Shown: piece by piece, positions 3,209-53,641 of the stretch
Position numbering within the stretch: the first letter of the stretch is position 1
Layout of the letters: every line of letters starts with the position of its first letter
Origin: Ascidiella aspersa
Taxonomy: Eukaryota
NCBI GenBank assembly: GCA_963924565.1
Contig: OZ004609.1
Span: forward strand, 5,208,001-5,272,000
Length of the DNA stretch: 64,000 nucleotides
Reading direction: 5' to 3'
Program-made: the position numbers and the translations under genes
Notes under the pieces: generated by a model
The model's database searches: none
What the model was told of the DNA's origin: nothing
The model's input: the letters and a program-made list of their open reading frames with translations, nothing else

Positions 3209-3388
3209 TCCGTCCGGTGAGAGGGATCACTGTGGAAATGAAAGAAGATGAGCGACTGGCCAAGCACGGTTAAAGCACGCAGCATGCGAAAAATATTTCT
3301 ACTAGTTATGGTTATGATTAAATTTACGGTTATGGTTACGGTTATATACAATGTTGTGATTTTGGTGTATGAAATGACTCTAGCTGGG

Positions 3389-4558
3389 TCAACATTTTTT
3401 CTTCTTATGTCTTCGTTTTGATTTGGGGGGTGTAGGCGTTCCTGTGGTCTGAGTGTCAGATGTACTTAAATTCCGTTTGTTTGTAGAAGGGTCGTATTCA
3501 TGGGTGGAATATTCTTGAGATGATTCCTGCAATGTTGGGGGGTTTGAAAATTTAGTCATGAGATTCATCACTGGAGTAGGGCTAGGATATATAAATGATC
3601 CGCGGGGATTGGGTATCGGCGGGCGGCACTTGGTAGTGGCTGGGTGTATGGTAGGCGGAGTGGGATGATTGGTTAGTAGGTTGTCCGGGGGGGAGGGGGA
3701 GGTGGGGTAGAGGGGCCATGGCTTATTAAGGCTTGATGTTGGCTCGTGTTGTCGTCGCTTTCTATTTCCTCAGAGTTGTCGGAGGGATAATTTGTATTGT
3801 TGGTTTGCATCATTGCTGTTAAGGGTATTTGGTTTTTCGTTTAACGCTGGAAAGTTTTCTTGATAGTTTTGCTGTTCTTTGTTGGTTTGAATTGTAGTTT
3901 CTGTATTTGTAGAGGATGACGCACCCTCACAGTTTTCTTTAATTTCGCTAACTTGGCGTAGTTTCTGAGGGCACTGGTTTGACCAGTGGCCCCTCTGCCG
4001 GCAAAACCGGCAGTTGGGGCCAAAAGAATCGCCAGGCTTGATGACCTGGATGCGGTGGTGATATATTGATATTTCTGATGGGATGTTGACTGTTAATGGA
4101 TCTTCCAATTGAATATTAACGTAGCCATTTCTTATAGCCGGATAGTTTTTGTGAGAAAGCCATTGGTGGGAGCGGTAATTTCCCCATTTCTGTTGGGAGG
4201 GAAGGGATTGGAGGAGGGGGTCGGGTAATTCAAAGGGAACTGGGTACAGGGTAATACGGTAAAGGGGTTTTGTTGGAATAAAAGATTGGAGGAGGAATTG
4301 GGTGCCATCCACCTCAACCCTCTCCTCGCGGATAAATTTGTCGTGAAGCTGGTTTCTTGTCGGGTCTTGATTTTGTTAATGTTACTCTAAATATTTTTTT
4401 ACTCTGTTAAGTGTTCGGATTCCTATTATTTCTTTTTTGTAAACCTGAAGGGGTTGGCCATATTCTATAAGATTGAAGAAATTTTCCAGTGTAAAAGTTC
4501 CGTCTGTAGTAATTTGAAAGTTGATGGTTGAGTCTTGGGTGAGAGATGAGGTACTCAT
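3389..4558 (-). pseudogene. E1 ORF1 remnant
   Basis: ATG at 4558 (MSTSSLTQD); fragments 3770-4312 (zinc knuckle) and 3389-3571 (basic C-terminus KKKKC). Confidence 0.85.
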
Positions 4559-6045
4559 CTTGGCCCAGCTAGAGTTGAGTTTTATGTTTTTTGTTTTGTG
4601 CTGTGTGATGTACGGTTTGTTGTGTTAATTACAATTTTTTGCACACTTACTTTTTGTTTTTGAATAAACGGTTGATAGTGCATAAATAAATATAGGTTTG
4701 TTTACAATTGTAGGTTCAGGAGCATAGAAAGTTTTATAACAGAGAAACAAAATGGCGGACTTATGGTCTCACTTATAGGTTTTAGATAAAGGGCGTGGTC
4801 AGATACAAAATGGCGGACAAATTTACCAAGTAGGGAAGTTAACAAGGTTAGTTAATAGCCTCTTCGCCCTTCCGCCAGTAGGAGCCCAACGACCTCCGTC
4901 AGTCAAGCCGATGACGTCGGCAAGACTGACAGGGGGTCCAACTAGCGCTACCACCAACAAACGGAAAAAAAGGCTATTAATTGCGTTTAAGTTACAATAT
5001 TATTATGCTGGCTTTTTTTAAACATAAACACAAAAGCCTGCAAACTAAATAAGCTGCAAACACCCTGAACACAGGCTGCTGCAGCCGAACTAAATATGTA
5101 CACTCCACAAATGAAAAAAAACGGATGGAAAAAATTGGAAAAAAATGGAATAATCGGAAGAAAACAAAAAAAAACGCAAAAAGCAGCGGGCAGTGGGATT
5201 CCCTTTGAATCGGGTAGTTTTTTTTCTCTCTCTATGTGTTTATTCAACAATGAAAAATAATAATCACCGAAAAACAAGTAATTTTTCATATATTTTTTGA
5301 GCCGGTAGATGGCGGTGAGGTGGTTAATGGAGGGAAAGGTGGCATGGGAAATCGTAATTATAATTCTGTGTGTTCAGGGTTATTATTATTTCTATATGGT
5401 CTTAGTTGTGCTATCTTGGGTCTATGTTCTTCATTAGGTGCTGTATTGACAGTTAAACTAGGCGATTTTGGGAAAGGACAATTACATATATAGATTTAGT
5501 TGCTCTATGGGATTTTATGTACACTGGGTTTTTGACTGAAGCATTAGGTCTTATTATATCGGCGTTTGCTTATTATGTTGTTATATATTATTTTTATCCA
5601 GGTTATTATATACGGGGGTGTGCCGTACTTCTCCAAAACCCTGACCGCGAAGTCAATGTCAACGCGGTCAAAGGCCTTGGAGAAGTCGGTGAGGATAATG
5701 GCTAACGGGTGGTTGTGGGATTGGGCGTATTGGATGGCTGCTTTGATGTTGTAATGAATATGCTGAATTTGTCTGTGTTTTAAGCCGCATTTTTGGTTTG
5801 CATGAATTCTGAATATGTTGTGTAAGTCTGTTAGTGATGGATTTTGTTATGATTTTATAATCTGTGTTTAGAATAGAGATTTTTTATCTCCTTTTTTTGG
5901 TATCAGCTTAACGACGGCCGTTCGCATGGACTTTGGCATTATATTCTGTAGATAAATGCTGTTTACTAATTCTGTCAAGTCCAGTTTTAGATGGGGCCAA
6001 AAGGTTATATAGAATTCTATCGGTAGGCCGTCGCAGCCTGGAGAC

Positions 6046-9028: not shown

Positions 9029-10150
9029 CTATGTTTCTTGCTGGAATTTGGAGATTAGATTTGAAACTAGTGTTGGGCTTGGGATTATGATCCGCGGGGA
9101 TTGGATATCAGTGGACGGCAGGGGGTGGTGGGTAGGGGTGTGATAGGTGGAGTTAACGGATTGATTTTGTATGATTGCATGGGAGGTTGAAGGGCGTTTG
9201 GGTCGGGGCAGGGGGTGGAGGTGGGGGAGAGGGGGTGCTGCGGGAAGGGGACAGGTGATTGGGTTGTGAAGTGTGTAGCTGGTCTGGTTTAGGTTCATCA
9301 GGTTTGTTTGCTTGGTTGTGGTTGTTTTCGTTGTTGGAATTTGCTGGATTGGTTTTCATCGATTACGAGGTCAGAGTTGTTGTTGTCGGAAAGGTCGGAG
9401 GGTACGTCATCTTGCCTTAGGCTTTCAGAGGATTGGTTAGGATTTTTATTTGGTTTGTTTGCTGTATTTTGGTTTATAATAGCTGGGAATTCTTCATTGT
9501 ATTTTTCTTGGTTGGTGGTTTCTTCTGAATTTTTGTTGGTTGTCGCAGAGGATGACGTACCCTCTTGGCTTTTGTTTGGTCGGTTTGCGTTATTTTTTTG
9601 TGGACACTGGTTGGACCAGTGTCCCCTTTGGCGGCAGAAGCGGCAGTTCGGGCCGAAAGATTCGCCGGGTTTTATCACCTGTATGCGGTTTTGAAAGATT
9701 GAAATTTCAGTTGGGATATTTGAGATTATTGGTTCTTCCTTCTAGGCTGAAGTTGACGTAACCGTTTCGGATTTCTGGGTGGTTCCTGTGAGATAACCAT
9801 TGGTGATTTTTGGAAGTTCAAATGGGACGGGGAAGAGGGTTAGGCGGTATAGGGGTTTGGTTGGAATAAATGATTGGAGGAGGAGTTGGGTGCCGTCCAC
9901 CTCAACCCGCTCCCCGCGGATATATTTGTCATGGAGTAGGTTTCGTGGAGGTTTTGTTTGTTTTGTTAAGGGTTATGGTGAATATTTTTTTTTCTCTGTT
10001 AAGAGTACGTATTCCTATAATTTATTTTTTGTATTGGTGTAGAGGTTGTCCATATTCGATAAGGTTAAAGAATTGTTCTAAGTTGAAGGGTCCGTCAGTG
10101 GAAACTTGAAAGTTGATGGTATGATCCTGGGTCAACGATGAGGTGCTCAT
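9029..10150 (-). pseudogene. E2 ORF1 remnant
   Basis: ATG at 10150; CRFCRQRGHWSNQC knuckle; a deletion near 9030 removes the ORF1 end, spacer and ORF2 start. Confidence 0.85.
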
Positions 10151-10786
10151 GTTGACCCAGCTAGAGTTGTTTTTATTTTATTTATGTGTTTTGCAGTGTT
10201 GATTTTCGCTTTTTTGTTATGAATAAAATTGCACGGATATATGGTTTTGAATTATTGATATAAAAGTATATAAATAGATTAGCTTATGATGTATATATAT
10301 ATAATTTGACACAAAATGGCGGATTAAATGGTGTTAACAGTAGGTTTTAGGCGGAAAAACGGGGACAAATTTAGGACACAAAATGGCGGCAAATAAATTT
10401 TTATGTTTAAATTTGAAAAGCCTGGCAGCCCGTCGGCGGGAGCTAGAGGGACTGCTGTCAATCAAGCCGACTGCGTCGGCAAGACTGACAGGAGCCCACG
10501 CAGTAGCCGCACGCCCAACAAACGGGAGGCCAGTCTATTCTTGCTAAGTTTTTACTGTTATACTACTAATGATTGTTGACTTTTAAACACAAAAAACACT
10601 TGCAAAACTGCACACAACCTGAACACAAGGCTGCTGCAGCCGAACTAAACTTGTAAGCTCCACAAATAATAAAAAATAAATGGAAAAAATTGAAAAAAGA
10701 TGGAAAAAATGGAAAAACGGAAAAAAACGCAAAAATCAGCGGGCAGCGGGATTCCCTTTGAATCGGGTAGTTGCTGGGTCCAACGA

Positions 10787-34203: not shown

Positions 34204-35370
34204 GGTGGAACAAGTTACCTTATTCAAATAGAATACTTTAAAATCGCGCGGCTAAGGCTTTATGCGAAGGCCAACTTTCAAAAACGCCAGTTTACTCAAT
34301 ATACGATTGTATGACTTCACCACCTATATAAGGGTGTCGCCAGAGAGGCGCTGGTAAGTATTCACCATGCTATGTGGTCACGTGGTACTTCGCGTTGTTC
34401 GAAATTTCTTGTCGCGCCCCGTTCGTTTCAACCGCGACATTTTTAACAAAAAATTAACGCTCAAAAAGCCAACTCAACATTGATCCCAATGCATATCGCG
34501 CGCTGTGGCACTTCAAAGGGCGGCCTACACGCAAGAGAGAAGCGCCCTACGGTAAGTTGGAGGAAGCGTCACCTGCGAAAGCCACGGGGGTCGGGCAGAC
34601 TTGCAAAGGAGAGAGAGAAGCTGATTTTGGTTATGGGAGAGTGGGCCAGGGCTATACATGCATTTTCGCCATCTCTTAATTTGACAAAGGACGCGATTAC
34701 GCGATTTGGGGATTTTGCTACATGAATGCAATACAGTGGGGGTAGCTTGGCTAAGCGATTGATTGGTTCTAAAAAATATTCCACCGTGGTGGAGCAACTT
34801 ACCTTATTCAAATAGAATACTTTAAAATCGCGCGGCTAAGGCTTTATGCGAAGGCCAACTTTCAAAAACGCCAGTTTACTCAATATACGATTGTATGACT
34901 TCACCACCTATATAAGGGTGTCGCCAGAGAGGCGCTGGTAAGTATTCACCATGCTATGTGGTCACGTGGTACTTCGCGTTGTTCGAAATTTCTTGTCGCG
35001 CCCCGTTCGTTTCAACCGCGACATTTTTAACAAAAAATTAACGCTCAAAAAGCCAACTCAACATTGATCCCAATGCATATCGCGCGCTGTGCCACTTCAA
35101 AGGGCGGCCTACACGCAAGAGAGAAGCGCCCTACGGTAAGTTGGAGGAAGCGTCACCTGCGAAAGCCACGGGGGTCGGGCAGACTTGCAAAGGAGAGAGA
35201 GGAGCTGATTTTGGTTATGGGAGAGTGGGCCAGGGCTATACATGCATTTTCGCCATCTCTTAATTTGACAAAGGACGCGATTACGCGATTTGGGGATTTT
35301 GCTACATGAATGCAATACAGTGGGGGTAGCTTGGCTAAGCGATTGATTGGTTCTAAAAAATATTCCACCG
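34204..35370 (-). repeat. SL RNA gene tandem repeat, 2 x 584 bp
   Basis: SL exons at 34219-34234 (fused to E5) and 34803-34818 (intact). Confidence 0.95.
34769..34818 (-). ncRNA. Intact spliced-leader RNA gene
   Basis: ATTCTATTTGAATAAG|GTAAGTTGCTCCACCACGGTGGAATATTTTTTAG: Ciona-type SL exon, GT donor, TCCAC/GTGGA hairpin, Sm-like A-U6-AG; 3' end approximate. Confidence 0.9.
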
Positions 35371-35982
35371 TTTTTTTTCTCTCTCTATGGGTTTATTTAC
35401 ATTAAACAAACGATAAACAAAGGCAATATAACAAAAACGAAAAATAAGAAAAACCAAAACAAACGAAAGAATAATTTTTTATATAGTAGTTATGATAGAA
35501 ATATGCTTCGATTTTGGAGCCGGTATATATGCAGGCTATTTAATTGGGAGTCTTTTTTAAGGTAGTTTGGACTTCGCGCGGTTTTAATGTGCTGTGTTAC
35601 TTGTTGGGGAATTGGCTATTTTTGGAGATGGCATTTTATATTTTATACTAATAGCTAGGTTTTGGACTTATGTTTGTAATTGCGTTTTATATATATGTGT
35701 CGATGTTTCGCTCTTAGTTATAGGACTATGTTTTTAAGGGAATTTTATGTTTTTAAGGACTATGTTTTTAAGGGAATTTTACACGGTTGGGTGATTTGCA
35801 GTGGTATGCAGGTTGAGTTCTTATATTTATATGGACAACCATTGTTTTATATGCTACTACATCACGGTTGGGTGGTTAGCGGTATGTACGTTGATATGTT
35901 ATATGTATACTATCAGGTAATGCTTTATGTGCCACTGCACTTTGAACTATTTTAGTTCAAGTTGTTGTGAAAAGTTGAGATT

Positions 35983-36054
35983 TTCGTCGGCGGGGTTTGA
36001 ACCCGCGGTCTCAGGACTTGATACCCGGTGACTTAGCCACTCGGCTATTCAGTT
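35983..36054 (-). promoter_or_regulatory. tRNA-derived Pol III promoter in E6 3' UTR
   Basis: A box TAGCCGAGTGG; B box GGTTCAAACCC; T-arm GCGGG/CCCGC; TTTT shortly downstream. Confidence 0.75.
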
Positions 36055-37222
36055 ATTGTGAGGAGGCGGTGAAAAGAGCGTATACGAATGACTAGTTTTG
36101 AGTTAAGGGGCTGTTTAGGCTGGGCTAGCTGGAAGTCATCCGCGGTTTGCGGATAGACATTTGCGTAGGTTGCAAGGGGGGCGAAGAAAATAAAAGGCGA
36201 GGAAAACAAATGTTTTAATAAGTAATATAACATAAGGAAATTAAATCTATCTCTTGCCAAACCGACAAGGGACGGCAAAACATTAAGTAATGGTTAGGTA
36301 TTCATCCGCATTTGGCGGAGGCTTAATATGCGAATTAAAGCAATAAATGGCTTTTAATAAACAGGATAGGTACAAAAAGGCACAGAATATATATAAAAAA
36401 GCAATGTAGAATTAAGTCTGCCTCTTGCCTAACCGGCAAGGGGCGGCAAATGACTTTAGGAAATAAGTAAATAAGATATTTATTAAGTCACGTGGTTTAG
36501 CCTCATGTGCTTATTCACAAAGGAGGTTTAGGCAGTGAAATTTTTAGGCTAGGTTTTTGGATGGTTGTGTATATTAGTAAAGGGTTATGACTTATAGAGC
36601 GGTTTATGGTAAGAAGATTATGATAAGTATTATCCAGTAGAGACGGTGACGTCACATTGTTTATACACATTACAGTCACTAGGCAACAGCCAGCTGTGTT
36701 TTGTTATTGTTATTGTTTTGGTTATATCAGCTGACCATTGCCTAGTGACGGCGGTTACATTTCAGGGAAAAAGAAGAACATAGGAAGTAAGCATGTGAAA
36801 TAATAATAGCAGATGTAACAAAAAGAAAAGAGTATGGTTTAAAAGTTGTCAAATAATTTTTAAAAGTGGATTATTTCACCCAAGACTTATTTCTATGGAT
36901 TATTATGTGGATCAAGAGTTTTAAGCAAAATTTAGAGGTATGTTAAATTAAAATTCATTGTTTTAACGAAATATACATTTGTTATATAATCACAAAGCAA
37001 TTTAAAATATAGTTTTTAACAAGAAGAAAAAATTTTTTTGATAGGAATTGGGACAAAGGTCAAGTTTCGGACTCTCTGGTTATCGAGTAGAGGCTGATCA
37101 TTAAGATACAGGTATTAATATATTATGGTTATTATTATTTTTTTGAAAATTTAGCAATTGCAGTGTTAATAGTAAATGAAGTAACAGTAGAAATAATTAT
37201 TTAATCGACAAAGATATACATA

Positions 37223-40200
37223 TTAAAATATTATAAGATTTTCGCTGCCGCTGTTAAGTTCCGAAGAAGTGTCAAGGTTGTAGAACTTGACCAGTCGCTC
37301 TGGTGACAAAATGCTCGCGAAGGATTTAAATTTGGTTCTGATTTTCCAGTATGTTTTATTGATAAATTTCGTTTGATCCCATATATAATCGTTTTCGAGA
37401 TCTTGTTTTTGTTTTGCTTTAATTAGGGTAGTTTTAAAAATATTTGCTAGTTTTATTATAAAAGGGTGAGTGTTACCTTGGGCTGGGCAGTTGTATTGTA
37501 GAATGGACGTGGATAGTTCTTCAGTACAGCCTCTGTCCTCGAGGATGAATGCCTCGAGTCTTCGGGCCAATTGTTTAACTACTGGACAATGCTCTATCAT
37601 ATGTGTTATGGTGTCTTCCTCATCTCTGCAAAGCTTGCAGTGCAGTTTGAATACCCTGCCCGTTTCGTTTTGGAAAATTTGGCGGTTCATTTTGAACTTA
37701 CCCCAAAAATAGCCTTTTTGTGCTATCCGATAATTGATTTCCCGTTCCGAATTGGTGTGAAAATATTTAACGTTATTGTTCTTTAAGAGAATGGTATTCC
37801 AACTGCATTGCGAGTCCTGCAGAGGGAGGGTGGTTGGAATATATTTATTTTTAACTATTTCTTTATATAGATGCTTTTGTTTTGCTGTTTCCCAGTCAAA
37901 GCTGTTTGCAGTTTGGCTGTTGATGATGTTATGATTATATATTTTGTTGATCCATTCTGGCCTTGTTTGTAAATTTTTTGGATAAGATTGGTTATATAAT
38001 TTGGGGTTTATTGATTTAGCTTTGAATCCAAGATGGTATCTGACCCATGAGTGCCAGAAGTCGGAGATGGTGTCCAAATTTTTATAATCTTTGAGCTGCT
38101 CGAGTTGAGCAGCTTCTATTTTAGCTCCGACATCTGGCACCCATAGGCCGCCTTCTTTTACCGGTGCGATTATTTTTTTCCTCGCTACGGGTTCCATGGA
38201 GAGTGGAAACCACAAAAAGCCAAAAATGAGGGTTTGAAATTGTTTAATGTATTTTTGCCTCATCGTTAGAATTCTAGCTGTAAAGATAATTTGGGACATG
38301 ATGAGGGCTTGTATCAAGTTTATTTTACCAAAGACCGAAAGGTTTCTATATTTGTGAATTTGGATTATGTTTTTAATTTTATCAATTTTTTTTGGCCAGT
38401 TTAGCTTTTCGTGGTCTCCACTCTCCCCGTAGCAGATTCCCAGTATTTTACATTCGGTTTTTACATATTCTGGGTATACAGTGGTAACTCTATGTTTCAG
38501 GTCCTTGTTAAAAGCAATTATTTCCGTTTTTTCGACGTTGAGTTTTTGTCCGCTTATTGTTTCATATTGTTTCAAGTTTAATAAAATTTGATTAATCGAT
38601 TCTACGTTGGTGGTAAAAAAAGTGCAGTCGTCTGCATACTGTTCCAGTTTGATTTCAGTTTTTCCAAATTTTGGTCCATTGATTTTAGGGTTGTTTTTTA
38701 TTATGTGGGCTAGTACGTCGGCACTGGCTATAAAGAGTAGCATCGACAGGGAGCATCCCTGTCGTATGCCTCTTTTGATTTGAATTTCGTTGCCAAGTTT
38801 CCCGTTGATAAGTATTTGGCTGGTGATATTTTTGTATATGATTTTTATCCAGTTTATCAGGTAGTTGGGTATGCCGTACTTCTCCAAGACCCTGATCGCG
38901 AAGCCAATGTCGACGCGGTCAAAGGCCTTGGAGAAGTCGGTGAGAACTAAAGCAAGCGGTTGTGTGTGTGATTTAGCATATTGTGATGCGGCTTTAATGT
39001 TATAGTGTATGTGTTGTATTGATCTGTTTTTTAGGCCGCATTTTTGATTTAGTGAGATTTTTTGATCTAGGTGTTGTGTAAGTCTGTTTGTGAGTGTTTT
39101 AGTGATAATTTTGTAATCTGTGTTGAGAAGAGAGATTGGTCTCCAGTTTTTTATTTGATTTTTATCTCCTTTTTTTGGTATTAATTTAACGACGGCCTTT
39201 CTCATGGACTTTGGCATTACATTTTGTAGGTAAATATTATTCACTAATTCTGTCAAGTCCAGTTTTAGTTGGGGCCAAAAGGTTATATAGAATTCTACCG
39301 GTAGGCCGTCGCAACCTGGAGACGAACCTCTGTTCATTTTGTTTATTGCTTGCTTTAGTTCTCGGGTGGTTATAAATAGTTGAGTTTTTGATGTGGGGGA
39401 TGTTCTAATTGTTTTCAGGATTTTCTTTTGTTTTTTACGTTTTACTGTGGGGTTTTGTCCCCACAGTTCGTCGTAAAAGGTGTGGATTATGGTTTCAATT
39501 TTTTGTGGGTTTGTTGTTGGGTTTTGATTTATCGGGTCGGTTAATTTGTGGATGCCGGTGTTGGTATTTCGGGTTTTCTCTTTTAAATAGAATTGGGTAT
39601 TAGGTATTTCGTCATTTTCAAAGTTTATGATTTTGGCTCGTTTTTTGGCTCCTTCCAGGATATTGTTTTCGTAGTCTTTGATTTTTTGTTTTGTTTCTAG
39701 GTATGTTTTGTTTGTTTGTAATTGCTGAGGGTCTATTTTTTCCATTAATGATTTTAAAGTTTGGGCGTATACTCGTTGTTGTTTTTCTTGTTGTTTTTTA
39801 AAATTGATGGAGAATGTTTTGGATTTTTTCCGAATTGATGATTTAAGATCTTCCCACCAATTTGATATGTGATGGTAGTCACATTTTTTTGTTTGCCAAT
39901 GCGCCAAATGTTCCCTTATTAAAGTTTTGTATTCCTCATTCTCCATCAATTGACAGTTCAATTTCCATATGCCTTTTCCCCATTTGGTCTGGGAGTTAAG
40001 TTTGATTTTAATAAAAGGGGATTGGGAATGGTCCGAAAAGGCATATGGAAAGTGCCCTGCTTGGTTGATCCAGGATGACAGGCTCTTGGTGTGGTAGATC
40101 CTGTCAATCCTGGATGCGGCTTTCCGTGCTATATACGTGTATGTTTTTTTGTGGGGGTAGAATAGTCGAAAGGAGTCAACTAAATCAAGTTGACTCCTCT

Positions 40201-40813
40201 CGACTATCCACCTCCTGGTTGCGATGTTTTGCCGTTGCCTGGTTGCGGTGTTGTCCTTGGGGTATTCAGTAAAATTGAAATCACCAAGGACGATATGGTT
40301 ATGACTATATTTATGGTTATGGCTATGTTTACGGTTATGGTTATGATTATGTTTATGGGGCTGCTTGATATCGTCTAGGACGGTGTCAAGCATCTCAAAG
40401 CGGGTTTTGACTTTTATTGAGCCTTCCCCAGACGGCAGATATAGATTATATATATTTATTTGTTCGTTTTCTTGTTTGTCGTCTGGGGACCATTCTATTG
40501 TTATTTGTTGGATTCTATCCGGGATGATTATTTTATGTTTTATACTATGTTTATTTAATTTGTCGAGGAAGGAGCCGTTGACTAAAAAAGCCGTGCCGGC
40601 GAAATTTAGATTAGAGTTAGTAGTGTTAGGATAGAAGATTATATTATGTTTATTTAGGATTGCATTAAATTTGGTAATATTAAAGTTATGAGTTTCCTGT
40701 ATACCCAGAATATGTATATTGTTTAGATTTACAAATGATAGAACACTGTCCAGTTTCTTACTTAATGAATTTACGTTGACAGAGGCTATCCTGATTTCGC
40801 CATCCACGTCCAT
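37223..40813 (-). CDS. E6 ORF2: APE endonuclease-RT, 1196 aa
   Basis: NVNS, QETH, GDFNF, RIDR, SDH; PGCDG, NWRPIS, DFSKAFDRV, QGCSLS, YADD; CKLC...H....C. Confidence 0.97.
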   Translation of the reverse strand: MDVDGEIRIASVNVNSLSKKLDSVLSFVNLNNIHILGIQETHNFNITKFNAILNKHNIIFYPNTTNSNLNFAGTAFLVNGSFLDKLNKHSIKHKIIIPDRIQQITIEWSPDDKQENEQINIYNLYLPSGEGSIKVKTRFEMLDTVLDDIKQPHKHNHNHNRKHSHNHKYSHNHIVLGDFNFTEYPKDNTATRQRQNIATRRWIVERSQLDLVDSFRLFYPHKKTYTYIARKAASRIDRIYHTKSLSSWINQAGHFPYAFSDHSQSPFIKIKLNSQTKWGKGIWKLNCQLMENEEYKTLIREHLAHWQTKKCDYHHISNWWEDLKSSIRKKSKTFSINFKKQQEKQQRVYAQTLKSLMEKIDPQQLQTNKTYLETKQKIKDYENNILEGAKKRAKIINFENDEIPNTQFYLKEKTRNTNTGIHKLTDPINQNPTTNPQKIETIIHTFYDELWGQNPTVKRKKQKKILKTIRTSPTSKTQLFITTRELKQAINKMNRGSSPGCDGLPVEFYITFWPQLKLDLTELVNNIYLQNVMPKSMRKAVVKLIPKKGDKNQIKNWRPISLLNTDYKIITKTLTNRLTQHLDQKISLNQKCGLKNRSIQHIHYNIKAASQYAKSHTQPLALVLTDFSKAFDRVDIGFAIRVLEKYGIPNYLINWIKIIYKNITSQILINGKLGNEIQIKRGIRQGCSLSMLLFIASADVLAHIIKNNPKINGPKFGKTEIKLEQYADDCTFFTTNVESINQILLNLKQYETISGQKLNVEKTEIIAFNKDLKHRVTTVYPEYVKTECKILGICYGESGDHEKLNWPKKIDKIKNIIQIHKYRNLSVFGKINLIQALIMSQIIFTARILTMRQKYIKQFQTLIFGFLWFPLSMEPVARKKIIAPVKEGGLWVPDVGAKIEAAQLEQLKDYKNLDTISDFWHSWVRYHLGFKAKSINPKLYNQSYPKNLQTRPEWINKIYNHNIINSQTANSFDWETAKQKHLYKEIVKNKYIPTTLPLQDSQCSWNTILLKNNNVKYFHTNSEREINYRIAQKGYFWGKFKMNRQIFQNETGRVFKLHCKLCRDEEDTITHMIEHCPVVKQLARRLEAFILEDRGCTEELSTSILQYNCPAQGNTHPFIIKLANIFKTTLIKAKQKQDLENDYIWDQTKFINKTYWKIRTKFKSFASILSPERLVKFYNLDTSSELNSGSENLIIF

Positions 40814-41000
40814 TCCGTCCGGTGAGAGGGATCACTGTGGAGAAAATGAGTATGATGAGCGACTGGCCAAGGAGGAAGAATTATACATGAAATAAAAACT
40901 ACGATTACGGTTATGATTATAATTACAGTTACGTTTACGATTATGATATGCTTTGTTATGGAATTGGTGTTCGTGTGAATGTGTGTGATGCCTAGCTTGG

Positions 41001-42329
41001 TCAGCATCCTTTCTTTTTCTTTCTGTTTTTTCTTTTTTGGCGTTGGGGTGGGGTTCCGTCGGTTGGGGTGTCGGTGGTGCTGAGTGTTCTTTTGTTACTG
41101 CTAGGGTCATGGCCTTCAGATTCAGTGCTTTCAGATTCGTCGGAGCTGGGAGCTTCTTGCTGGAATTTGGAGATTAGATTTGAAACTAGTGTTGGGCTTG
41201 GGATTATGATCCGCGGGGATTGGACATCAGTGGACGACAGGGGGTGGTGGGTGGGGGTGTGATAGGTGGAGTTAACGGATTGATTTTGTATGATTGCATG
41301 GGAGGTTGAAGGGCGTTGGGGTCGGGGAGGTGGGGAGTTTTGGGCAGGGGGTGGAGGTGGGGGAGAGAGGGTGCTGCGGGAAGGGGACAGGTGATTGGGT
41401 TGCGAGGTGTGTAGCTGGTCTGGTTTGGGTTCATCAGGTTTGTTTGCTTGGTTGTGGTTGTTTTCGTTGTCGGAATTGCTGGATTGGTTTTCATCGATTA
41501 CGAGGTTAGAGTTGTTGTTGTCGGATAGGTCAGAGGGTACGTCATCTTGCCTTAGGCTTTCAGAGGATTGGTTAGGATTTTTATTTGGTTTGTTTGCTGC
41601 ATTTTGGTTTGTAATAGCTGGGAATTCTTCATTGTATTTTTCTTGGTTGGTGATTTCTTCTGGATTTTTGTTGGTTGTCGCAGAGGGTGATGTACCCTCT
41701 TGGCTTTTGTTTGGTTGGTTTGCGTTATTTTTTTGTGGACACTGGTTAGACCAGTGTCCCCTTTGGCGGCAGAATCGGCAGTTCGGGCCGAATGATTCGC
41801 CTGGTTTTATCACCTGTATGCGGTTTTGAAAGATTGAAATTTCAGTTGGGATATTTGAGATTATTGGTTCTTCTAGGCTGAGGTTGACGTAACCGTTTCG
41901 GATTTCTGGGTGGTTTCTGTGAGATAACCATTGGTGATTTTTATATTTTCCCCAGCTTAGCTTGCTGGGGAGGGCTTCTAATCGGTCGTCTGGTAGTTCA
42001 AATGGGACGGGGAAGAGGGTTATACGGTATAGGGGTTTGGAGGGGGTAAAGGATTGGAGGAGGATTTGGGTGCCGTCCACCTCAATCCTCTCCCCGCGGA
42101 TGTATTTTTCGTGTAGTTGGTTTCTAATGTGTTGTTGCTGGTTTTTGAAAGTAATTGTAAAGATTTTTTTTTCCCTGTTCAGAGTTCGAATGCCAATAAT
42201 TGATGTTTTATAGTGGTGCAGTGGTTGACGTTCTTGGATTAAATTGAAAAAGTTTTCTAGGGTGAATGGTCCGGTGGTCGAGATTTGAATGTTGATCGTA
42301 TGATCCTGGCATAGCGTAGAGGTCGCCAT
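41001..42329 (-). CDS. E6 ORF1 (family C), single CCHC knuckle, 442 aa
   Basis: CRFCRQRGHWSNQC; ATG at 42329 (MATSTL). Confidence 0.92.
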   Translation of the reverse strand: MATSTLCQDHTINIQISTTGPFTLENFFNLIQERQPLHHYKTSIIGIRTLNREKKIFTITFKNQQQHIRNQLHEKYIRGERIEVDGTQILLQSFTPSKPLYRITLFPVPFELPDDRLEALPSKLSWGKYKNHQWLSHRNHPEIRNGYVNLSLEEPIISNIPTEISIFQNRIQVIKPGESFGPNCRFCRQRGHWSNQCPQKNNANQPNKSQEGTSPSATTNKNPEEITNQEKYNEEFPAITNQNAANKPNKNPNQSSESLRQDDVPSDLSDNNNSNLVIDENQSSNSDNENNHNQANKPDEPKPDQLHTSQPNHLSPSRSTLSPPPPPPAQNSPPPRPQRPSTSHAIIQNQSVNSTYHTPTHHPLSSTDVQSPRIIIPSPTLVSNLISKFQQEAPSSDESESTESEGHDPSSNKRTLSTTDTPTDGTPPQRQKRKNRKKKKGC

Positions 42330-43587
42330 GCTGACCAAGCTAGAGTTGTTTTTATTTTATTTATGTGTTTTGCAGTGTTGATTTTCGCTTTTTTGTTATG
42401 AATAAAATTGCACGGATATATGGTTTTGAATTATTGATATAAAAGTATATAAAAGTATGTATGGGCAAAGATATAGTTGTATAAAAGTATATAAATAGAT
42501 TAGCTTATGATGTATAAATATATGATCTGACACAAAATGGCGGATTAAATGGTGTTAACAGTAGGTTTTAGGCGGGAAAACGGGGACAAATTTAGGACAC
42601 AAAATGGCGGCAAATAAATTTTTATGTTTAAATTTGAAGAGCCTGGCAGCCCTGCCGTCGGCGGGAGCTAGAGGGACTGCTGTCAATCAAGCCGACTACG
42701 TCGGCAAGACTGACAGGAGCCCACGCAGTAGCCGCACGCCCAACAAACGGGAGGCCAGTCTATTCTTGCTAAGTTTTTACTGTTATATTACTAATGGTTG
42801 TTGACTTTCAAACACAAAAAACACCTGCAAAACTGCACACAACCTGAACACAAGGCTGCTGCAGCCGAACTAAACTTGTAAGCTCCACAAATAATAAAAA
42901 ATAAATGGAAAAAATTGAAAAAAGATGGAAAAAATGGAAAAAACGGAAAAAAAAAAAAAAAAACGCAAAAAAGCAGCGGGCAGCGGGATTCCCTTTGAAT
43001 CGGGTAGTTGCTGGGTCCAACGAGTGGAGCAATTTACCTTATTCAAATAGAATACTTTAAAATCGCGCGGCTAAGGCTTTATGCGAAGGCCAACTTTCAA
43101 AAACGCCAGTTTACTCAATATACGATTGTATGACTTCACCACCTATATAAGGGTGTCGCCAGAGAGGCGCTGGTAAGTATTCACCATGCTATGTGGTCAC
43201 GTGGTACTTCGCGTTGTTCGAAATTTCTTGTCGCGCCCCGTTCGTTTCAACCGCGACATTTTTAACAAAAAATTAACGCTCAAAAAGCCAACTCAACATT
43301 GATCCCAATGCATATCGCGCGCTGTGCCACTTCAAAGGGCGGCCTACACGCAAGAGAGAAGCGCCCTACGGTAAGTTGGAGGAAGCGTCACCTGCGAAAG
43401 CCACGGGGGTCGGGCAGACTTGCAAAGGAGAGAGAGGAGCTGATTTTGGTTATGGGAGAGTGGGCCAGGGCTATACATGCATTTTCGCCATCTCTTAATT
43501 TGACAAAGGACGCGATTACGCGATTTGGGGATTTTGCTACATGAATGCAATACAGTGGGGGTAGCTTGGCTAAGCGATTGATTGGTT

Positions 43588-43637
43588 CTAAAAAATATTC
43601 CACCGTGGTGGAGCAACTTACCTTATTCAAATAGAAT
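43588..43637 (-). ncRNA. Intact spliced-leader RNA gene
   Basis: Identical to 34769-34818. Confidence 0.9.
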
Positions 43638-50786: not shown

Positions 50787-50973
50787 TCCGTCCGGTGAGA
50801 GGGATCACTGTGGAGAAAATGAGTATGATGAGCGACTGGCCAAGGAGGAAGAATTATACATGAAATAAAAACTACGATTACGGTTATGATTATAATTACA
50901 GTTACGTTTACGATTATGATATGCTTTGTTATGGAATTGGTGTTCGTGTGAATGTGTGTGATGCCTAGCTTGG

Positions 50974-52302
50974 TCAGCATCCTTTCTTTTTCTTTCTGTT
51001 TTTTCTTTTTTGGCGTTGGGGTGGGGTTCCGTCGGTTGGGGTGTCGGTGGTGCTGAGTGTTCTTTTGTTACTGCTAGGGTCATGGCCTTCAGATTCAGTG
51101 CTTTCAGATTCGTCGGAGCTGGGAGCTTCTTGCTGGAATTTGGAGATTAGATTTGAAACTAGTGTTGGGCTTGGGATTATGATCCGCGGGGATTGGACAT
51201 CAGTGGACGACAGGGGGTGGTGGGTGGGGGTGTGATAGGTGGAGTTAACGGATTGATTTTGTATGATTGCATGGGAGGTTGAAGGGCGTTGGGGTCGGGG
51301 AGGTGGGGAGTTTTGGGCAGGGGGTGGAGGTGGGGGAGAGAGGGTGCTGCGGGAAGGGGACAGGTGATTGGGTTGCGAGGTGTGTAGCTGGTCTGGTTTG
51401 GGTTCATCAGGTTTGTTTGCTTGGTTGTGGTTGTTTTCGTTGTCGGAATTGCTGGATTGGTTTTCATCGATTACGAGGTTAGAGTTGTTGTTGTCGGATA
51501 GGTCAGAGGGTACGTCATCTTGCCTTAGGCTTTCAGAGGATTGGTTAGGATTTTTATTTGGTTTGTTTGCTGCATTTTGGTTTGTAATAGCTGGGAATTC
51601 TTCATTGTATTTTTCTTGGTTGGTGATTTCTTCTGGATTTTTGTTGGTTGTCGCAGAGGGTGATGTACCCTCTTGGCTTTTGTTTGGTTGGTTTGCGTTA
51701 TTTTTTTGTGGACACTGGTTAGACCAGTGTCCCCTTTGGCGGCAGAATCGGCAGTTCGGGCCGAATGATTCGCCTGGTTTTATCACCTGTATGCGGTTTT
51801 GAAAGATTGAAATTTCAGTTGGGATATTTGAGATTATTGGTTCTTCTAGGCTGAGGTTGACGTAACCGTTTCGGATTTCTGGGTGGTTTCTGTGAGATAA
51901 CCATTGGTGATTTTTATATTTTCCCCAGCTTAGCTTGCTGGGGAGGGCTTCTAATCGGTCGTCTGGTAGTTCAAATGGGACGGGGAAGAGGGTTATACGG
52001 TATAGGGGTTTGGAGGGGGTAAAGGATTGGAGGAGGATTTGGGTGCCGTCCACCTCAATCCTCTCCCCGCGGATGTATTTTTCGTGTAGTTGGTTTCTAA
52101 TGTGTTGTTGCTGGTTTTTGAAAGTAATTGTAAAGATTTTTTTTTCCCTGTTCAGAGTTCGAATGCCAATAATTGATGTTTTATAGTGGTGCAGTGGTTG
52201 ACGTTCTTGGATTAAATTGAAAAAGTTTTCTAGGGTGAATGGTCCGGTAGTCGAGACTTGAATGTTGATCGTATGATCCTGGCATAGCGTAGAGGTCGCC
52301 AT
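50974..52302 (-). CDS. E7 ORF1 (family C)
   Basis: Single CCHC knuckle; ATG at 52302. Confidence 0.92.
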   Translation of the reverse strand: MATSTLCQDHTINIQVSTTGPFTLENFFNLIQERQPLHHYKTSIIGIRTLNREKKIFTITFKNQQQHIRNQLHEKYIRGERIEVDGTQILLQSFTPSKPLYRITLFPVPFELPDDRLEALPSKLSWGKYKNHQWLSHRNHPEIRNGYVNLSLEEPIISNIPTEISIFQNRIQVIKPGESFGPNCRFCRQRGHWSNQCPQKNNANQPNKSQEGTSPSATTNKNPEEITNQEKYNEEFPAITNQNAANKPNKNPNQSSESLRQDDVPSDLSDNNNSNLVIDENQSSNSDNENNHNQANKPDEPKPDQLHTSQPNHLSPSRSTLSPPPPPPAQNSPPPRPQRPSTSHAIIQNQSVNSTYHTPTHHPLSSTDVQSPRIIIPSPTLVSNLISKFQQEAPSSDESESTESEGHDPSSNKRTLSTTDTPTDGTPPQRQKRKNRKKKKGC

Positions 52303-53064
52303 GCTGACCAAGCTAGGAGTGTATTTTATGTATATTTTGTTGTGATGTTGCGATTATTTTTTGGTGTTATATTCAATAAATACAAAAATGGGTTAATTTT
52401 CAAGGGTGTTTTTGTGTTTTACACGATTTGCATATAGTTTTACAGAGCACGAATAGGGTGTTGTTATTTAAATAAGTGTATAAATATTAAGAGTTATGAA
52501 TATATATAAATATATATATATATATTAGATTATATAAATCAATTTGAAGTTTTCTGATAGAAAATGGCGGACTTATGGTCCCACCAATAAGTTAAAGTTG
52601 TGAAAAAAATGGCGGCAAAGCAGAAACAAAATGGCGGCCGAACAGCGGCGTTAAATATAATTAAAGAACAAAGGACTAAGATAGAAGCCCCCTAAGCCCA
52701 CCGCTGGTGGGAGCCAACGGACCGCCGCCAGTCAAGCCGACGACGTCGGCAAGACTGACAGAGGTCCAAGGACTTTTGCCACCCACAAATGGGAAAAAAA
52801 GGCCGCTAGCTGTCTAATAACAATAACAGTAAGGCTGCTTCTACTTTTATACATAAAAGAAAAAACTGCACACTGCAACTGAAAACACAACTTAAGCACA
52901 ACCTGAAAACCAGGGCTGCTACAGCCACTAAATCTCCACAAACTATAATAAATAATTCTAAAAAAATTGGAAAAACTGGAAAAAATGGAAAACAGGAAAA
53001 AAAAGCAAAAAAGCAGCGGGCAGCGCGATTCCGTTTGAATTGGGTAGTTGCTAGGGTCCAACAC

Positions 53065-53641
53065 GTGGAGCAAATTACCTTATTCAAATAGAATACTTTA
53101 AAATCGCGCGGCTAAGGCTTTATGCGAAGGCCAACTTTCAAAAACGCCAGTTTACTCAATATACGATTGTATGACTTCACCACCTATATAAGGGTGTCGC
53201 CAGAGAGGCGCTGGTAAGTATTCACCATGCTATGTGGTCACGTGGTACTTCGCGTTGTTCGAAATTTCTTGTCGCGCCCCGTTCGTTTCAACCGCGACAT
53301 TTTTAACAAAAAATTAACGCTCAAAAAGCCAACTCAACATTGATCCCAATGCATATCGCGCGCTGTGGCACTTCAAAGGGCGGCCTACACGCAAGAGAGA
53401 AGCGCCCTACGGTAAGTTGGAGGAAGCGTCACCTGCGAAAGCCACGGGGGTCGGGCAGACTTGCAAAGGAGAGAGAGAAGCTGATTTTGGTTATGGGAGA
53501 GTGGGCCAGGGCTATACATGCATTTTCGCCATCTCTTAATTTGACAAAGGACGCGATTACGCGATTTGGGGATTTTGCTACATGAATGCAATACAGTGGG
53601 GGTAGCTTGGATAAGCGATTGATTGGTTCTAAAAAATATTC
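53065..53641 (-). repeat. SL RNA gene repeat unit (1 copy); SL exon 53079-53094 fused to E7
   Basis: 584-bp unit sequence; donor GTAATT. Confidence 0.95.

Follow-up and report, generated by a model that had tools for sequence, protein, structure and literature searches.

Complementary arms at the start and stop codons of ORF1 suggest a long-range RNA helix in LINEs carried by Ascidiella aspersa spliced-leader genes

Family C elements and the spliced-leader locus

The L1-like LINEs of family C occur in low copy number in Ascidiella aspersa, where they are carried inside spliced-leader (SL) RNA genes. A single 330-kb SL gene cluster houses all family C copies, among them E1, E2, E6 and E7 in the window, the stretch of 64,000 nucleotides that was analyzed. 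The elements are inserted in the intron hairpin of the SL RNA genes. There are four intact ORF1 lineages (C1, C1', C2 and C3), between which ORF1 has a dN/dS of 0.06 to 0.09 and a dS of 1.2 to >2, meaning that synonymous sites are saturated. The locus is recombinogenic, with mosaic copies and with leaders that are largely unalignable between lineages. The leader of E6 is of the C2 type, and that of E7 differs from it.

We use E6, which lies on the minus strand, to describe the element. An SL exon (43038 to 43053) is fused upstream of E6 and is followed by the donor GTAAAT. This exon is identical over its 16 nt to the Ciona SL given in PMC1488885. Donors beside elements are weakened to GTAAAT or GTAATT, whereas free SL genes carry GTAAGT. 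The 5' leader (42344 to 43023) runs from the SL-intron junction to the start arm described below. No ATG occurs in the 724 nt that separate the SL exon from the ORF1 ATG, where about 11 are expected, and leaders across copies have 0 to 3 AUGs per 704 to 794 nt, none of them near the start arm. Such an AUG-poor leader implies scanning to the ORF1 AUG. ORF1 (41001 to 42329) encodes 442 aa with one CCHC knuckle (Pfam). ORF2 (37223 to 40813) encodes 1196 aa with L1-like APE and RT domains, matched in Pfam by Exo_endo_phos (residues 10 to 262) and RVT_1 (residues 545 to 793), and its closest solved relative is human LINE-1 ORF2p (E = 5.5e-61). At the 3' end, an A8 run (35371 to 35378) directly abuts the resumed SL intron. 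An N-terminal APE followed by RT, an upstream CCHC ORF1 and a 3' A-tail place the element among the APE-type (L1-like) non-LTR retrotransposons. One ORF1 homologue was seen beyond the A. aspersa genome (P0001, 45% identity), and a further genomic locus holds a relic (C3:31,686,223).

Non-LTR elements confined to SL gene arrays are known from trypanosomatids (SLACS, CZAR and CRE) and from nematodes (NeSL-1); these carry a restriction-like endonuclease and insert into the SL exon. Family C resembles them in being a non-LTR family that lies head to tail in SL arrays, where an SL promoter is usable. However, it has an N-terminal APE, is L1-like, and sits in the SL intron hairpin rather than in the exon (compare PMC3636483 for SL-gene-specific LINEs). 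A Pfam search of E6 ORF2 found no REL domain, and its N-terminal APE places it outside the NeSL/SLACS-CZAR clade. Family C is probably transcribed from the SL promoter. The setting is one of APE-type, L1-like LINEs specialized on chordate SL RNA genes, for which the host SL gene may provide transcription, capping and perhaps splicing. A Drosophila-like telomere was rejected as a reading of the head-to-tail, one-strand array: its 584-bp repeats proved to be SL RNA genes, and it lies in the interior of a 39-Mb contig. The 584-bp repeats are also not 5'- or 3'-UTR monomers, because the junctions show them to be the target SL genes.

Complementary arms at the ORF1 start and stop codons

A preliminary description had proposed that a duplex between the ORF1 start and stop codons loops out ORF1, and had suggested that this could divert ribosomes or splicing to ORF2, return terminating ribosomes to the ORF1 AUG, or switch the RNA between translation and packaging. 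We refer to this duplex as helix A. In E6, the start arm (42328 to 42343, minus strand) extends from -14 to +2 relative to the ORF1 ATG (A at 42329). The stop arm (40992 to 41007, minus strand) spans the TGA (41003 to 41001), the 4 nt that precede it and the 9 nt that follow, and includes an overlapping ATG (41007 to 41005). The two arms are perfectly complementary (16/16) and lie 1.32 kb apart, as had been described, so that helix A encloses the 1.3 kb of ORF1. The 17-nt arms of E7 (start, 52301 to 52317; stop, 50964 to 50980; both minus strand) likewise match at 17/17 positions. E1 is a decayed copy of lineage C3, and its start arm (4557 to 4575, minus strand) has two mismatches to its own stop arm (3377 to 3395, minus strand). 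The C2-type copy E2 retains its start arm (10149 to 10167, minus strand) and has lost its own stop arm by deletion. The E1 and E2 arm sequences had been quoted correctly, as had the two mismatches in E1. The intact C3 copy (L029) has arms identical to those of E1.

All four intact lineages keep helix A. Across lineages, the paired segment at the ORF1 AUG begins at -17/-14 and ends at +2, its partner is the UGA with the next 9 to 12 nt, and the helix measures 16 to 19 bp. The pairing is perfect over 16 to 17 bp in C1 and C1', and it extends over 18/19 positions in C2 and 17/19 in C3. Mismatches within intact copies are limited to one A.C in C2 (three copies) and two in C3, and they sit near the AUG end. 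The start arm was found in 12 of 12 genomic family C copies, and the stop arm in ten genomic copies, all in the same SL cluster. Genome-wide, helix A arms without mismatch were found nowhere outside family C copies.

In 500 dinucleotide shuffles of ORF1 with 60 nt on either side (1.45 kb), the longest perfect inverted repeat was 13 nt. Pairing of the start window with the stop window has a duplex energy from -28 to -34 kcal/mol (z = -6.6 to -8.8). The sister families A and B, whose ORF1 N terminus is homologous to that of family C, lack a start-stop duplex (z between -0.5 and +0.8). An Rfam 15 covariance-model search returned nothing at the arms and two subthreshold matches elsewhere, with no family that fits. 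We considered terminal inverted repeats of a DNA transposon around a captured ORF1, and rejected this origin because ORF1 is homologous to the arm-less ORF1 of families A and B. E6 also has an outer pairing of 20 A/U-rich nt (42345 to 42364 with 40883 to 40902), which was set aside as low in complexity and dependent on leader type.

The "two compensatory substitutions" cited in the preliminary description came from pairing the E2 start arm with the E1 stop arm, which belong to different lineages. However, there is real covariation within copies. RNAalifold applied to the four lineages recovered helix A with 3 of 17 pairs changed on both sides; this count, like that for helix B below, comes from 4 sequences that are effectively three to four lineages of one recombining locus, and it is below R-scape-grade statistics. 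Both-side changes include C-G<->U-A at the outermost pair and U-A<->G-C at core position 7, and core position 13 reads G-C, A.C or A-U across lineages. In helix A, 95.6% of the cells are canonical, versus 18 to 43% in slid registers. Because the complementarity survives deep divergence with matching changes on both arms, it is probably a real RNA fold. Judging from these sequence comparisons, we consider it likely that helix A is a real, selected sense-strand RNA helix.

The proposed looping of ORF1 thus gains from the conservation, the both-side changes, the pairing frequency and the nested helix described below. However, its thermodynamic support depends on context. When ORF1 is folded with 60 nt on either side, helix A has a probability of about 1.0 in all four lineages. 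In a 2.6-kb context, from the SL exon to ORF2 +300, its probability is 0.05 and it is absent from the MFE structure, although forcing it costs only 3.5 kcal/mol. Judging by Kozak's hairpin experiments, which reportedly found that scanning ribosomes normally open duplexes in the range of about -30 kcal/mol, any repression by helix A may be weak. A single RNA-seq run yielded 11 reads in all, with none on ORF1 or the leader.

Nested helices, the small ORF and the ORF2 start

RNAalifold also predicted nested helices in ORF1, at alignment columns 159-162/1237-1240, 254-285/1192-1223 and 592-597/1034-1039. The helix that we call helix B has its E6 5' arm at 42071 to 42101, about 230 nt after the ATG, and its 3' arm at 41209 to 41239, about 210 nt before the stop codon (both minus strand). 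It comprises 27 consensus pairs nested within helix A, with G-U/G-C/A-U exchanges. Two of the 27 pairs are changed on both sides, and besides the commonest pair types 8 others occur, most of them G-U exchanges. Canonical cells make up 94.4% of helix B, and the slid-register range for helices A and B together is 18 to 49%. Third positions of the codons in helix B, which are synonymous, are invariant in 7 of 8 cases, compared with 25 of 115 elsewhere (p = 3e-4). The G-U<->G-C exchanges and the A-U/G-U/G-C series work only on the sense strand, and they therefore point to a sense-strand RNA structure.

The stop arm also opens a small ORF (40786 to 41007 in E6, minus strand; 73 codons), which starts at the ATG in that arm and ends 25 nt past the ORF2 ATG. 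An AUG overlapping the stop codon, as in termination-reinitiation, is present in all lineages (AUGYUGA, that is, AUGCUGA or AUGUUGA). The small ORF is open in all four, at 73, 75, 78 and 78 codons, and the other two frames are interrupted by stops. Its peptide is poorly conserved, and its openness could partly reflect hexamer-repeat indels. The spacer between ORF1 and ORF2 measures 187 to 202 nt. By inspection, the lysine-codon-rich sequence 5' of the ORF1 stop has no motif-1-like element with the 18S complementarity typical of TURBS. Readthrough of the ORF1 stop was rejected: the UGA-C context is leaky, yet an in-frame UAG follows 3 codons on. A -1 frameshift joining ORF1 to the small ORF lacks a canonical slippery site, and the small ORF is not in the ORF2 frame. 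In all lineages an invariant pyrimidine tract and CACAG lie 21 nt before the ORF2 ATG. The CUGAC in the stop arm was rejected as a branch point for it, with the acceptor 165 nt off and AG dinucleotides between.

The ORF2 start-codon region has a long-range partner as well. Its 5' arm (40802 to 40815) forms a perfect 14-bp pairing with a 3' arm (37501 to 37514; both minus strand) that lies 3.3 kb downstream, about 280 nt before the ORF2 stop. The match is 14/14 in six aligned copies, and both arms are invariant, so this pairing is uninformative for covariation. A perfect 16-nt inverted repeat in ORF2 (39348 to 39363 with 38942 to 38957) is specific to C1, with clustered changes: 8 of the 16 positions of one arm are altered relative to C2/C3, against a local background of about 21%. 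Perfect repeats of this kind can thus appear in one lineage with no long-term conservation.

Possible roles of the start-stop helix

Helix A and the nested helix B would make the 1.3-kb ORF1 a closed RNA domain. With this clamp closed, the ORF1 initiation site would be masked, and so would the ORF1 termination site and the overlapping AUG of AUGYUGA. A scanning 43S complex on one arm, or a terminating 80S ribosome on the other, would free the opposite arm. ORF1 initiation, ORF1 termination and reinitiation toward ORF2 would in this way be coupled, and RNA that is not being translated would stay closed. Translational gating or coupling as the role of helix A is a tentative assignment from sequence patterns, which we hold to be somewhat short of an even bet. 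Overall, a selected RNA clamp that gates or couples translation in family C is our best explanation, with about as much to be said for it as against it.

The helices may instead be selected for architecture, giving a compact 7.6-kb RNA that serves RNP assembly or packaging, stability, or the shielding of internal sites against nucleases or SL trans-splicing. That helix A falls at the start and stop codons would then be incidental, these codons being where the ORF1 module begins and ends. Family C is indeed rich in perfect inverted repeats of at least 13 nt, with 7 (20, 17, 16, 16, 15, 14 and 13 nt) where 0.6 are expected; several are kept across lineages, and ORF1 contains nested helices. The host also trans-splices, and the element's 5' end bears an SL exon and donor. 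However, helices fall exactly on both start codons, one of them also on the stop and its overlapping AUG, which would be unlikely if position were irrelevant, and families A and B occupy the same niche without such helices and have 0 to 3 such repeats. We therefore regard architecture as a minority reading, rather unlikely on balance. RNA processing is more doubtful still. Looping out ORF1 would shorten the path from the 5' SL donor, or from free SL RNA, to the acceptor-like site before ORF2 and so favor an SL-ORF2 mRNA. The invariant pyrimidine tract and CACAG fit this idea, as does the fusion of each element to an SL exon and donor. Against it, no read carries an SL-ORF2 junction (at the very low depth of 11 reads), the genome contains no retrocopy with one, and the element-adjacent donors are weakened. 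Looping would also shorten the path only in part, because about 700 nt separate the upstream donor from the start arm, and about 165 nt the stop arm from the downstream acceptor. We consider this role improbable.

An equally small probability goes to the arms having no RNA function, in either of two forms taken together. They could be a by-product of a template switch or repair event that copied one arm from the other, or they could be one double-stranded DNA motif present in both orientations, with each arm conserved separately (the Kozak context at one end; the ORF1 C terminus or small ORF at the other). The C1-specific ORF2 repeat does resemble the product of a single templated change, the locus recombines readily, and perfect Watson-Crick arms alone do not tell which strand matters. 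However, template-switch mutations usually reach far less than the 1.3 kb that separates the arms, and C2 and C3 retain uncorrected mismatches. The start arm from -14 to -7 lies outside any Kozak context and yet is invariant except at the covarying position 7, beside a leader that hardly aligns between lineages, and the G-U intermediates and suppressed synonymous change in helix B argue for selection on the sense RNA. Chance complementarity is scarcely credible: although 64 kb had been scanned to find the repeat, it exceeds the shuffle maxima, falls exactly at the start and stop codons, and is kept in four lineages at saturated dS.

The translational clamp might be part of a larger conformational switch, in which nested long-range helices mask both the ORF1 and ORF2 AUGs. 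AUGYUGA would open a relay ORF of 73 to 78 codons running into ORF2, and ribosomes that open the ORF1 clamp would be passed at AUGYUGA to this relay, which delivers them to ORF2. We think this extended scheme, built from sequence features, is unlikely as a whole. If true, a LINE that borrows a host SL promoter and leader would have evolved a new, structure-gated control of its ORF1:ORF2 ratio. Translation of ORF2 from the bicistronic RNA of LINEs is poorly understood, as is the balance between translating this RNA and using it as a template; human L1 (unconventional reinitiation) and SART1 (UAAUG with a local structure) are the cases known. A helix that ties ORF1 initiation to termination and restart would, if real, be a new kind of retrotransposon cis-element, and its 16- to 19-bp arms with natural compensatory variants make a compact test system.

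The logic of helix A is closest to the long-range switches of phages and RNA viruses. In the Min Jou interaction of RNA phages (MS2/Q-beta), a distant segment of the upstream cistron masks an initiation site, and translating ribosomes open it, which couples coat and replicase. The likeness lies in a start site masked by distant pairing and opened by ribosomes, as proposed for family C. However, the phage system is prokaryotic, uses Shine-Dalgarno internal entry and spans a few hundred nucleotides, whereas in this eukaryote a whole 1.3-kb ORF would be looped, and masking would affect the start of the first cistron itself together with its stop/restart site. Flavivirus cyclization (5' UAR/CS with 3' UAR/CS) is a covarying long-range pairing that takes in the start-codon region and by which the RNA alternates between being translated and serving as a template. 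Helix A is likewise covarying, long-range and at a start-codon region, but it links the start and the stop of one internal retrotransposon ORF, while the flaviviral pairing acts in RNA replication and brings together the 5' end and the 3' UTR of a complete genome.

In the CaMV/RTBV ribosome shunt, a stable helix sets the leader beside a downstream landing site, and a short upstream ORF ends just before the stem. The sides of helix A could similarly let ribosomes bypass the enclosed sequence. However, family C encloses a functional ORF, and a CaMV-type short upstream ORF before the stem is absent, the last 60 to 250 nt of the leaders having no AUG and E6 none in its 724 nt (the pararetrovirus shunt is mentioned in PMC3542737). 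Termination-reinitiation has been described for SART1 (UAAUG with a downstream structure), human L1 ORF2, the calicivirus and influenza B TURBS, and pneumovirus M2 (PMC5972666). Family C differs from these systems in its 187- to 202-nt spacer bridged by the small ORF, and in a helix spanning 1.3 kb instead of a local element. It shares with them bicistronic ORF1/ORF2 RNA, an AUG overlapping the upstream stop and a predicted RNA structure at the stop-restart site. The small-ORF stop lies 25 nt past the ORF2 AUG, and pneumoviruses tolerate an overlap of roughly 29 nt.

A probable long-range helix closing ORF1 of family C

The window is contig C3:5208001-5272000, and all of its coding sequence lies on the minus strand. 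In E6, a copy of the L1-like LINE family C, the arm at the ORF1 start codon (42343-42328) and the arm at the stop codon (41007-40992, both minus strand) are exact reverse complements. The last two bases of the start arm, in the sense direction, are the AU of the ORF1 AUG (its A is at 42329), and the stop arm contains the ORF1 UGA (41003-41001). We call this pairing helix A. The arms of the copy E7 (52317-52301 with 50980-50964, minus strand) are those of E6 plus one pair. Comparison of the arm sequences bore out both matches as reported in the preliminary description, and the arms that it quoted for the copies E1 and E2 agree with ours. In 500 dinucleotide-preserving shuffles of ORF1 with 60 nt on either side, perfect inverted repeats reached at most 13 nt, and the duplex between the start and stop windows has an energy of -28 to -34 kcal/mol (z = -6.6 to -8.8). 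Because of this shuffle maximum and these z-scores, we consider a chance origin of helix A negligible.

Intact family C ORF1s form four lineages: C1 (E6, E7, L023, and L024), C1' (L025), C2 (L026-L028), and C3 (L029, with E1 as a decayed copy). Paired within its own copy, helix A is perfect over 16 to 17 bp in C1 and C1', has 19 bp with one A.C in C2, and has 19 bp with C.A and G.G in C3. Hence the helix is retained in all four intact lineages. The two compensatory substitutions of the preliminary description stood less well. Its perfect 19-mer paired the E2 start arm with the E1 stop arm; since the E2 stop arm is lost and E1 and E2 are of separate lineages, this double compensation is a cross-copy construct. 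However, RNAalifold identified other both-sided changes within copies. Across the four lineages, which share a single recombining locus, three pairs of the 17-pair helix vary, and the covariation is real. In the order C1, C1', C2, C3, the outermost pair (columns 11/1450) is C-G, C-G, U-A, U-A; core position 7 (columns 18/1443) is U-A, U-A, G-C, G-C; and core position 13 (columns 24/1437) is G-C, G-C, A.C, A-U. Canonical pairs fill 95.6% of the cells in the four lineages, versus 18 to 43% when the partner is slid by 1 to 3 columns, and no slid register has a double change. The noncoding start-arm positions -14 to -7 are invariant save for the covarying one, and the leader beside the arm is mostly unalignable across lineages. 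The lineages are old and under purifying selection, with dS of 1.2 to >2 (saturated) and dN/dS of 0.06 to 0.09 between them over the N-terminal 196 codons of ORF1.

Genome-wide searches by DNA, protein, and sequence pattern confined family C to contig C3:5.10-5.43 Mb. All 12 start arms and 10 stop arms lie there, and the searches found no exact arm beyond it. Outside the SL cluster, a decayed relic of ORF1 with 42% amino acid identity has a start arm with one mismatch at the expected position (contig C3:31686223-31686239, minus strand); therefore, the start arm is older than the four living lineages.

Nested helices and folding of the ORF1 RNA

Helix A encloses an inner helix B, which lies inside ORF1 (42101-42071 with 41239-41209 in E6, minus strand; 27 consensus pairs). 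Both per-lineage partition-function folding and RNAalifold recovered helix B, along with two smaller long-range helices nested in ORF1. Its variation forms G-U/G-C and A-U/G-U/G-C series, in which pairing is kept on the sense strand only. Helix B is 94.4% canonical (31 to 49% when slid), and 7 of its 8 synonymous third positions are invariant, versus 25 of 115 elsewhere (P = 3e-4). Helix B thus offers independent support for a folded, selected ORF1 RNA domain, with helix A as its putative outer closure.

When ORF1 is folded with 60 nt on either side, the core pairs of helix A have a probability of about 1.0 in all four lineages, and those closest to the AUG drop to 0.2 to 0.7. In a 2.6-kb fold that takes in the entire leader and 300 nt of ORF2, the helix A probability is 0.05; the minimum free energy structure, in which the fast-evolving leader is paired to the spacer and ORF2, retains helix B. 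Forcing helix A into this fold costs only 3.5 kcal/mol of -499. The case for helix A is carried by the evolutionary evidence; energy models cannot decide it.

Family C has seven perfect inverted repeats of at least 13 nt (20, 17, 16, 16, 15, 14, and 13), versus 0.6 expected, and its sister families A and B have 0 to 3. A 14-bp repeat at the ORF2 AUG region (40815-40802 with 37514-37501) is invariant in all copies, a 15-bp repeat (39937-39951 with 39802-39816) is conserved, and a 20-bp repeat (40716-40697 with 38481-38462) is conserved in part, having undergone one compensatory change and two wobble changes. Families A and B occupy the same SL genes, and their ORF1 N termini are homologous to that of family C (45% identity). 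Comparison of their start and stop windows found no start-stop duplex, and their ORF1-ORF2 spacer is only about 45 nt.

Possible roles of the helix

The arms of helix A cover the ORF1 initiation site and a termination/restart site, and a second start-codon helix lies at ORF2. In every lineage an AUG stands 4 nt ahead of the UGA (AUGCUGA or AUGUUGA). It opens onto a small ORF (40786-41007, minus strand) of 73 to 78 codons that is open in all four lineages, spans the entire spacer, and stops 25 nt beyond the ORF2 AUG; the remaining two spacer frames have stops. This openness is suggestive. We do not take it as proof, because the peptide is poorly conserved and its indels are hexamer repeats. The 60 nt upstream and 45 nt downstream of the ORF2 AUG are near invariant.

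Our best guess, held tentatively, is a translational role in which the clamp gates and couples translation. The closed RNA would mask both the initiation site and the termination/restart site. A 43S complex or 80S ribosome occupying one arm would release the other, and terminating ribosomes could reinitiate at the overlapping AUG, from which they would be passed on to ORF2. Such a clamp resembles in its logic the Min Jou interaction of MS2 and flavivirus cyclization. The stop-start overlap is similar to those in SART1, calicivirus, and pneumovirus coupling, and the 25-nt overlap of the small ORF with ORF2 is inside the range known from pneumovirus M2 (PMC5972666). A shunt of the CaMV type was rejected because no short ORF ends ahead of the stem.

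An architectural, packaging, or protective role, with which the nested helices would also fit, seems rather unlikely. That helix A assists SL-dependent processing of the ORF2 mRNA is improbable. A pyrimidine tract with CACAG (40835-40848, minus strand), invariant and 21 nt upstream of the ORF2 ATG, resembles a splice acceptor and is a possible trans-splice acceptor. However, the genome has no retrocopy of an SL-ORF2 junction, and none was seen among the 11 RNA-seq reads at the locus (one run of the species, about 6% read). None of these reads is on ORF1 or the leader. Four of the 11 connect 40779 (ORF2 codon 12) to the 3' UTR at about 37110 (minus strand) across a CTGT microhomology, and probably derive from an expressed ORF2-deleted copy elsewhere.

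We likewise give little credence to helix A as a by-product or DNA-level motif. Its A.C and C.A mismatches would form wobble pairs in antisense RNA, but three such cases carry no information on strand. A C1-specific 16-bp repeat (39363-39348 with 38957-38942) has its changes concentrated in one of the arms, perhaps through templated mutation; this origin therefore stays a rival for some repeats. Family C copies are also mosaic (L051, L052, L053, and L055 against window 36700-43100); their breakpoints fall at the start arm, immediately past the ORF2 ATG, and around element position 4700. In E6 the switch from a C2-type leader to a C1 body falls inside the start arm, and ORF2 halves are swapped between L051 (spanning the C1' copy L025) and L055 (spanning the C1 copy L024). 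The covariation and sliding controls argue for pairing, and helix A is quite probably a real, selected RNA helix. Rfam had no match to helix A, and full-text searches of the literature turned up no description of a long-range helix between start and stop codons in any LINE. The three C2 copies, spaced 37 to 44 kb apart, resemble segmental duplicates.

Family C in the spliced leader gene cluster

The 584-bp repeats between elements each have a 16-nt SL exon followed by GTAAGT. These tandem units are SL RNA genes (window 10787-62017, e.g., 43038-43053, 43622-43637, and 34219-34234), and the SL is identical to that of Ciona (PMC1488885). They are confined to contig C3:5.23-5.43 Mb of the 308-Mb genome, with 1 to 13 per block. 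Three L1-like LINE families, A, B, and C, occupy the hairpin of the SL intron in a head-to-tail arrangement, and the cluster appears colonized in full. SLACS, CZAR, and NeSL have a similar niche but a different endonuclease.

Each element is inserted 14 nt into the SL intron, and the rest of that intron resumes immediately beyond the terminal A-run of the element. From these junctions, E6 spans about 43023 to 35371 (about 7.65 kb), with a leader of about 680 nt, ORF1 (442 aa, CCHC), a 187-nt spacer, ORF2 (1,196 aa, APE and RT; closest solved relative human L1 ORF2p, E = 5.5e-61), and a 1.85-kb 3' UTR. The 704 to 794 nt from the SL exon to the ORF1 AUG hold 0 to 3 AUGs, versus 11 to 13 expected, in a set including E7 and L051-L055; E6 has none (42330-43053). 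Such a leader would suit an RNA that is transcribed from the SL promoter and scanned to ORF1 from an SL-capped 5' end. The donor of the element-fused SL is GTAAAT or GTAATT (E6, 43031-43037; E7, 53072-53078), versus GTAAGT in a free SL gene (43615-43621), and the variant tracks leader type. This suggests that the retrotransposed RNA includes the SL exon together with the first bases of the intron, and that the donor is weakened.

The 3' UTR (35990-36060, minus strand, and 36675-36749) has a tRNA-like stretch (GCCGAGTGGCTAAG ... GGTTCAAACCCCGCC), in which ARAGORN called no tRNA, and a 22-bp hairpin that encloses a short (CAATAA)-like repeat. Homologues of the family C ORF1 (30 to 45% identity) cluster at C7:14.2-15.1 Mb, C36, C5:15.4-15.5 Mb, C8:18.2 Mb, and C2:36.7 Mb, and these clusters on other contigs may be additional target-specific arrays.
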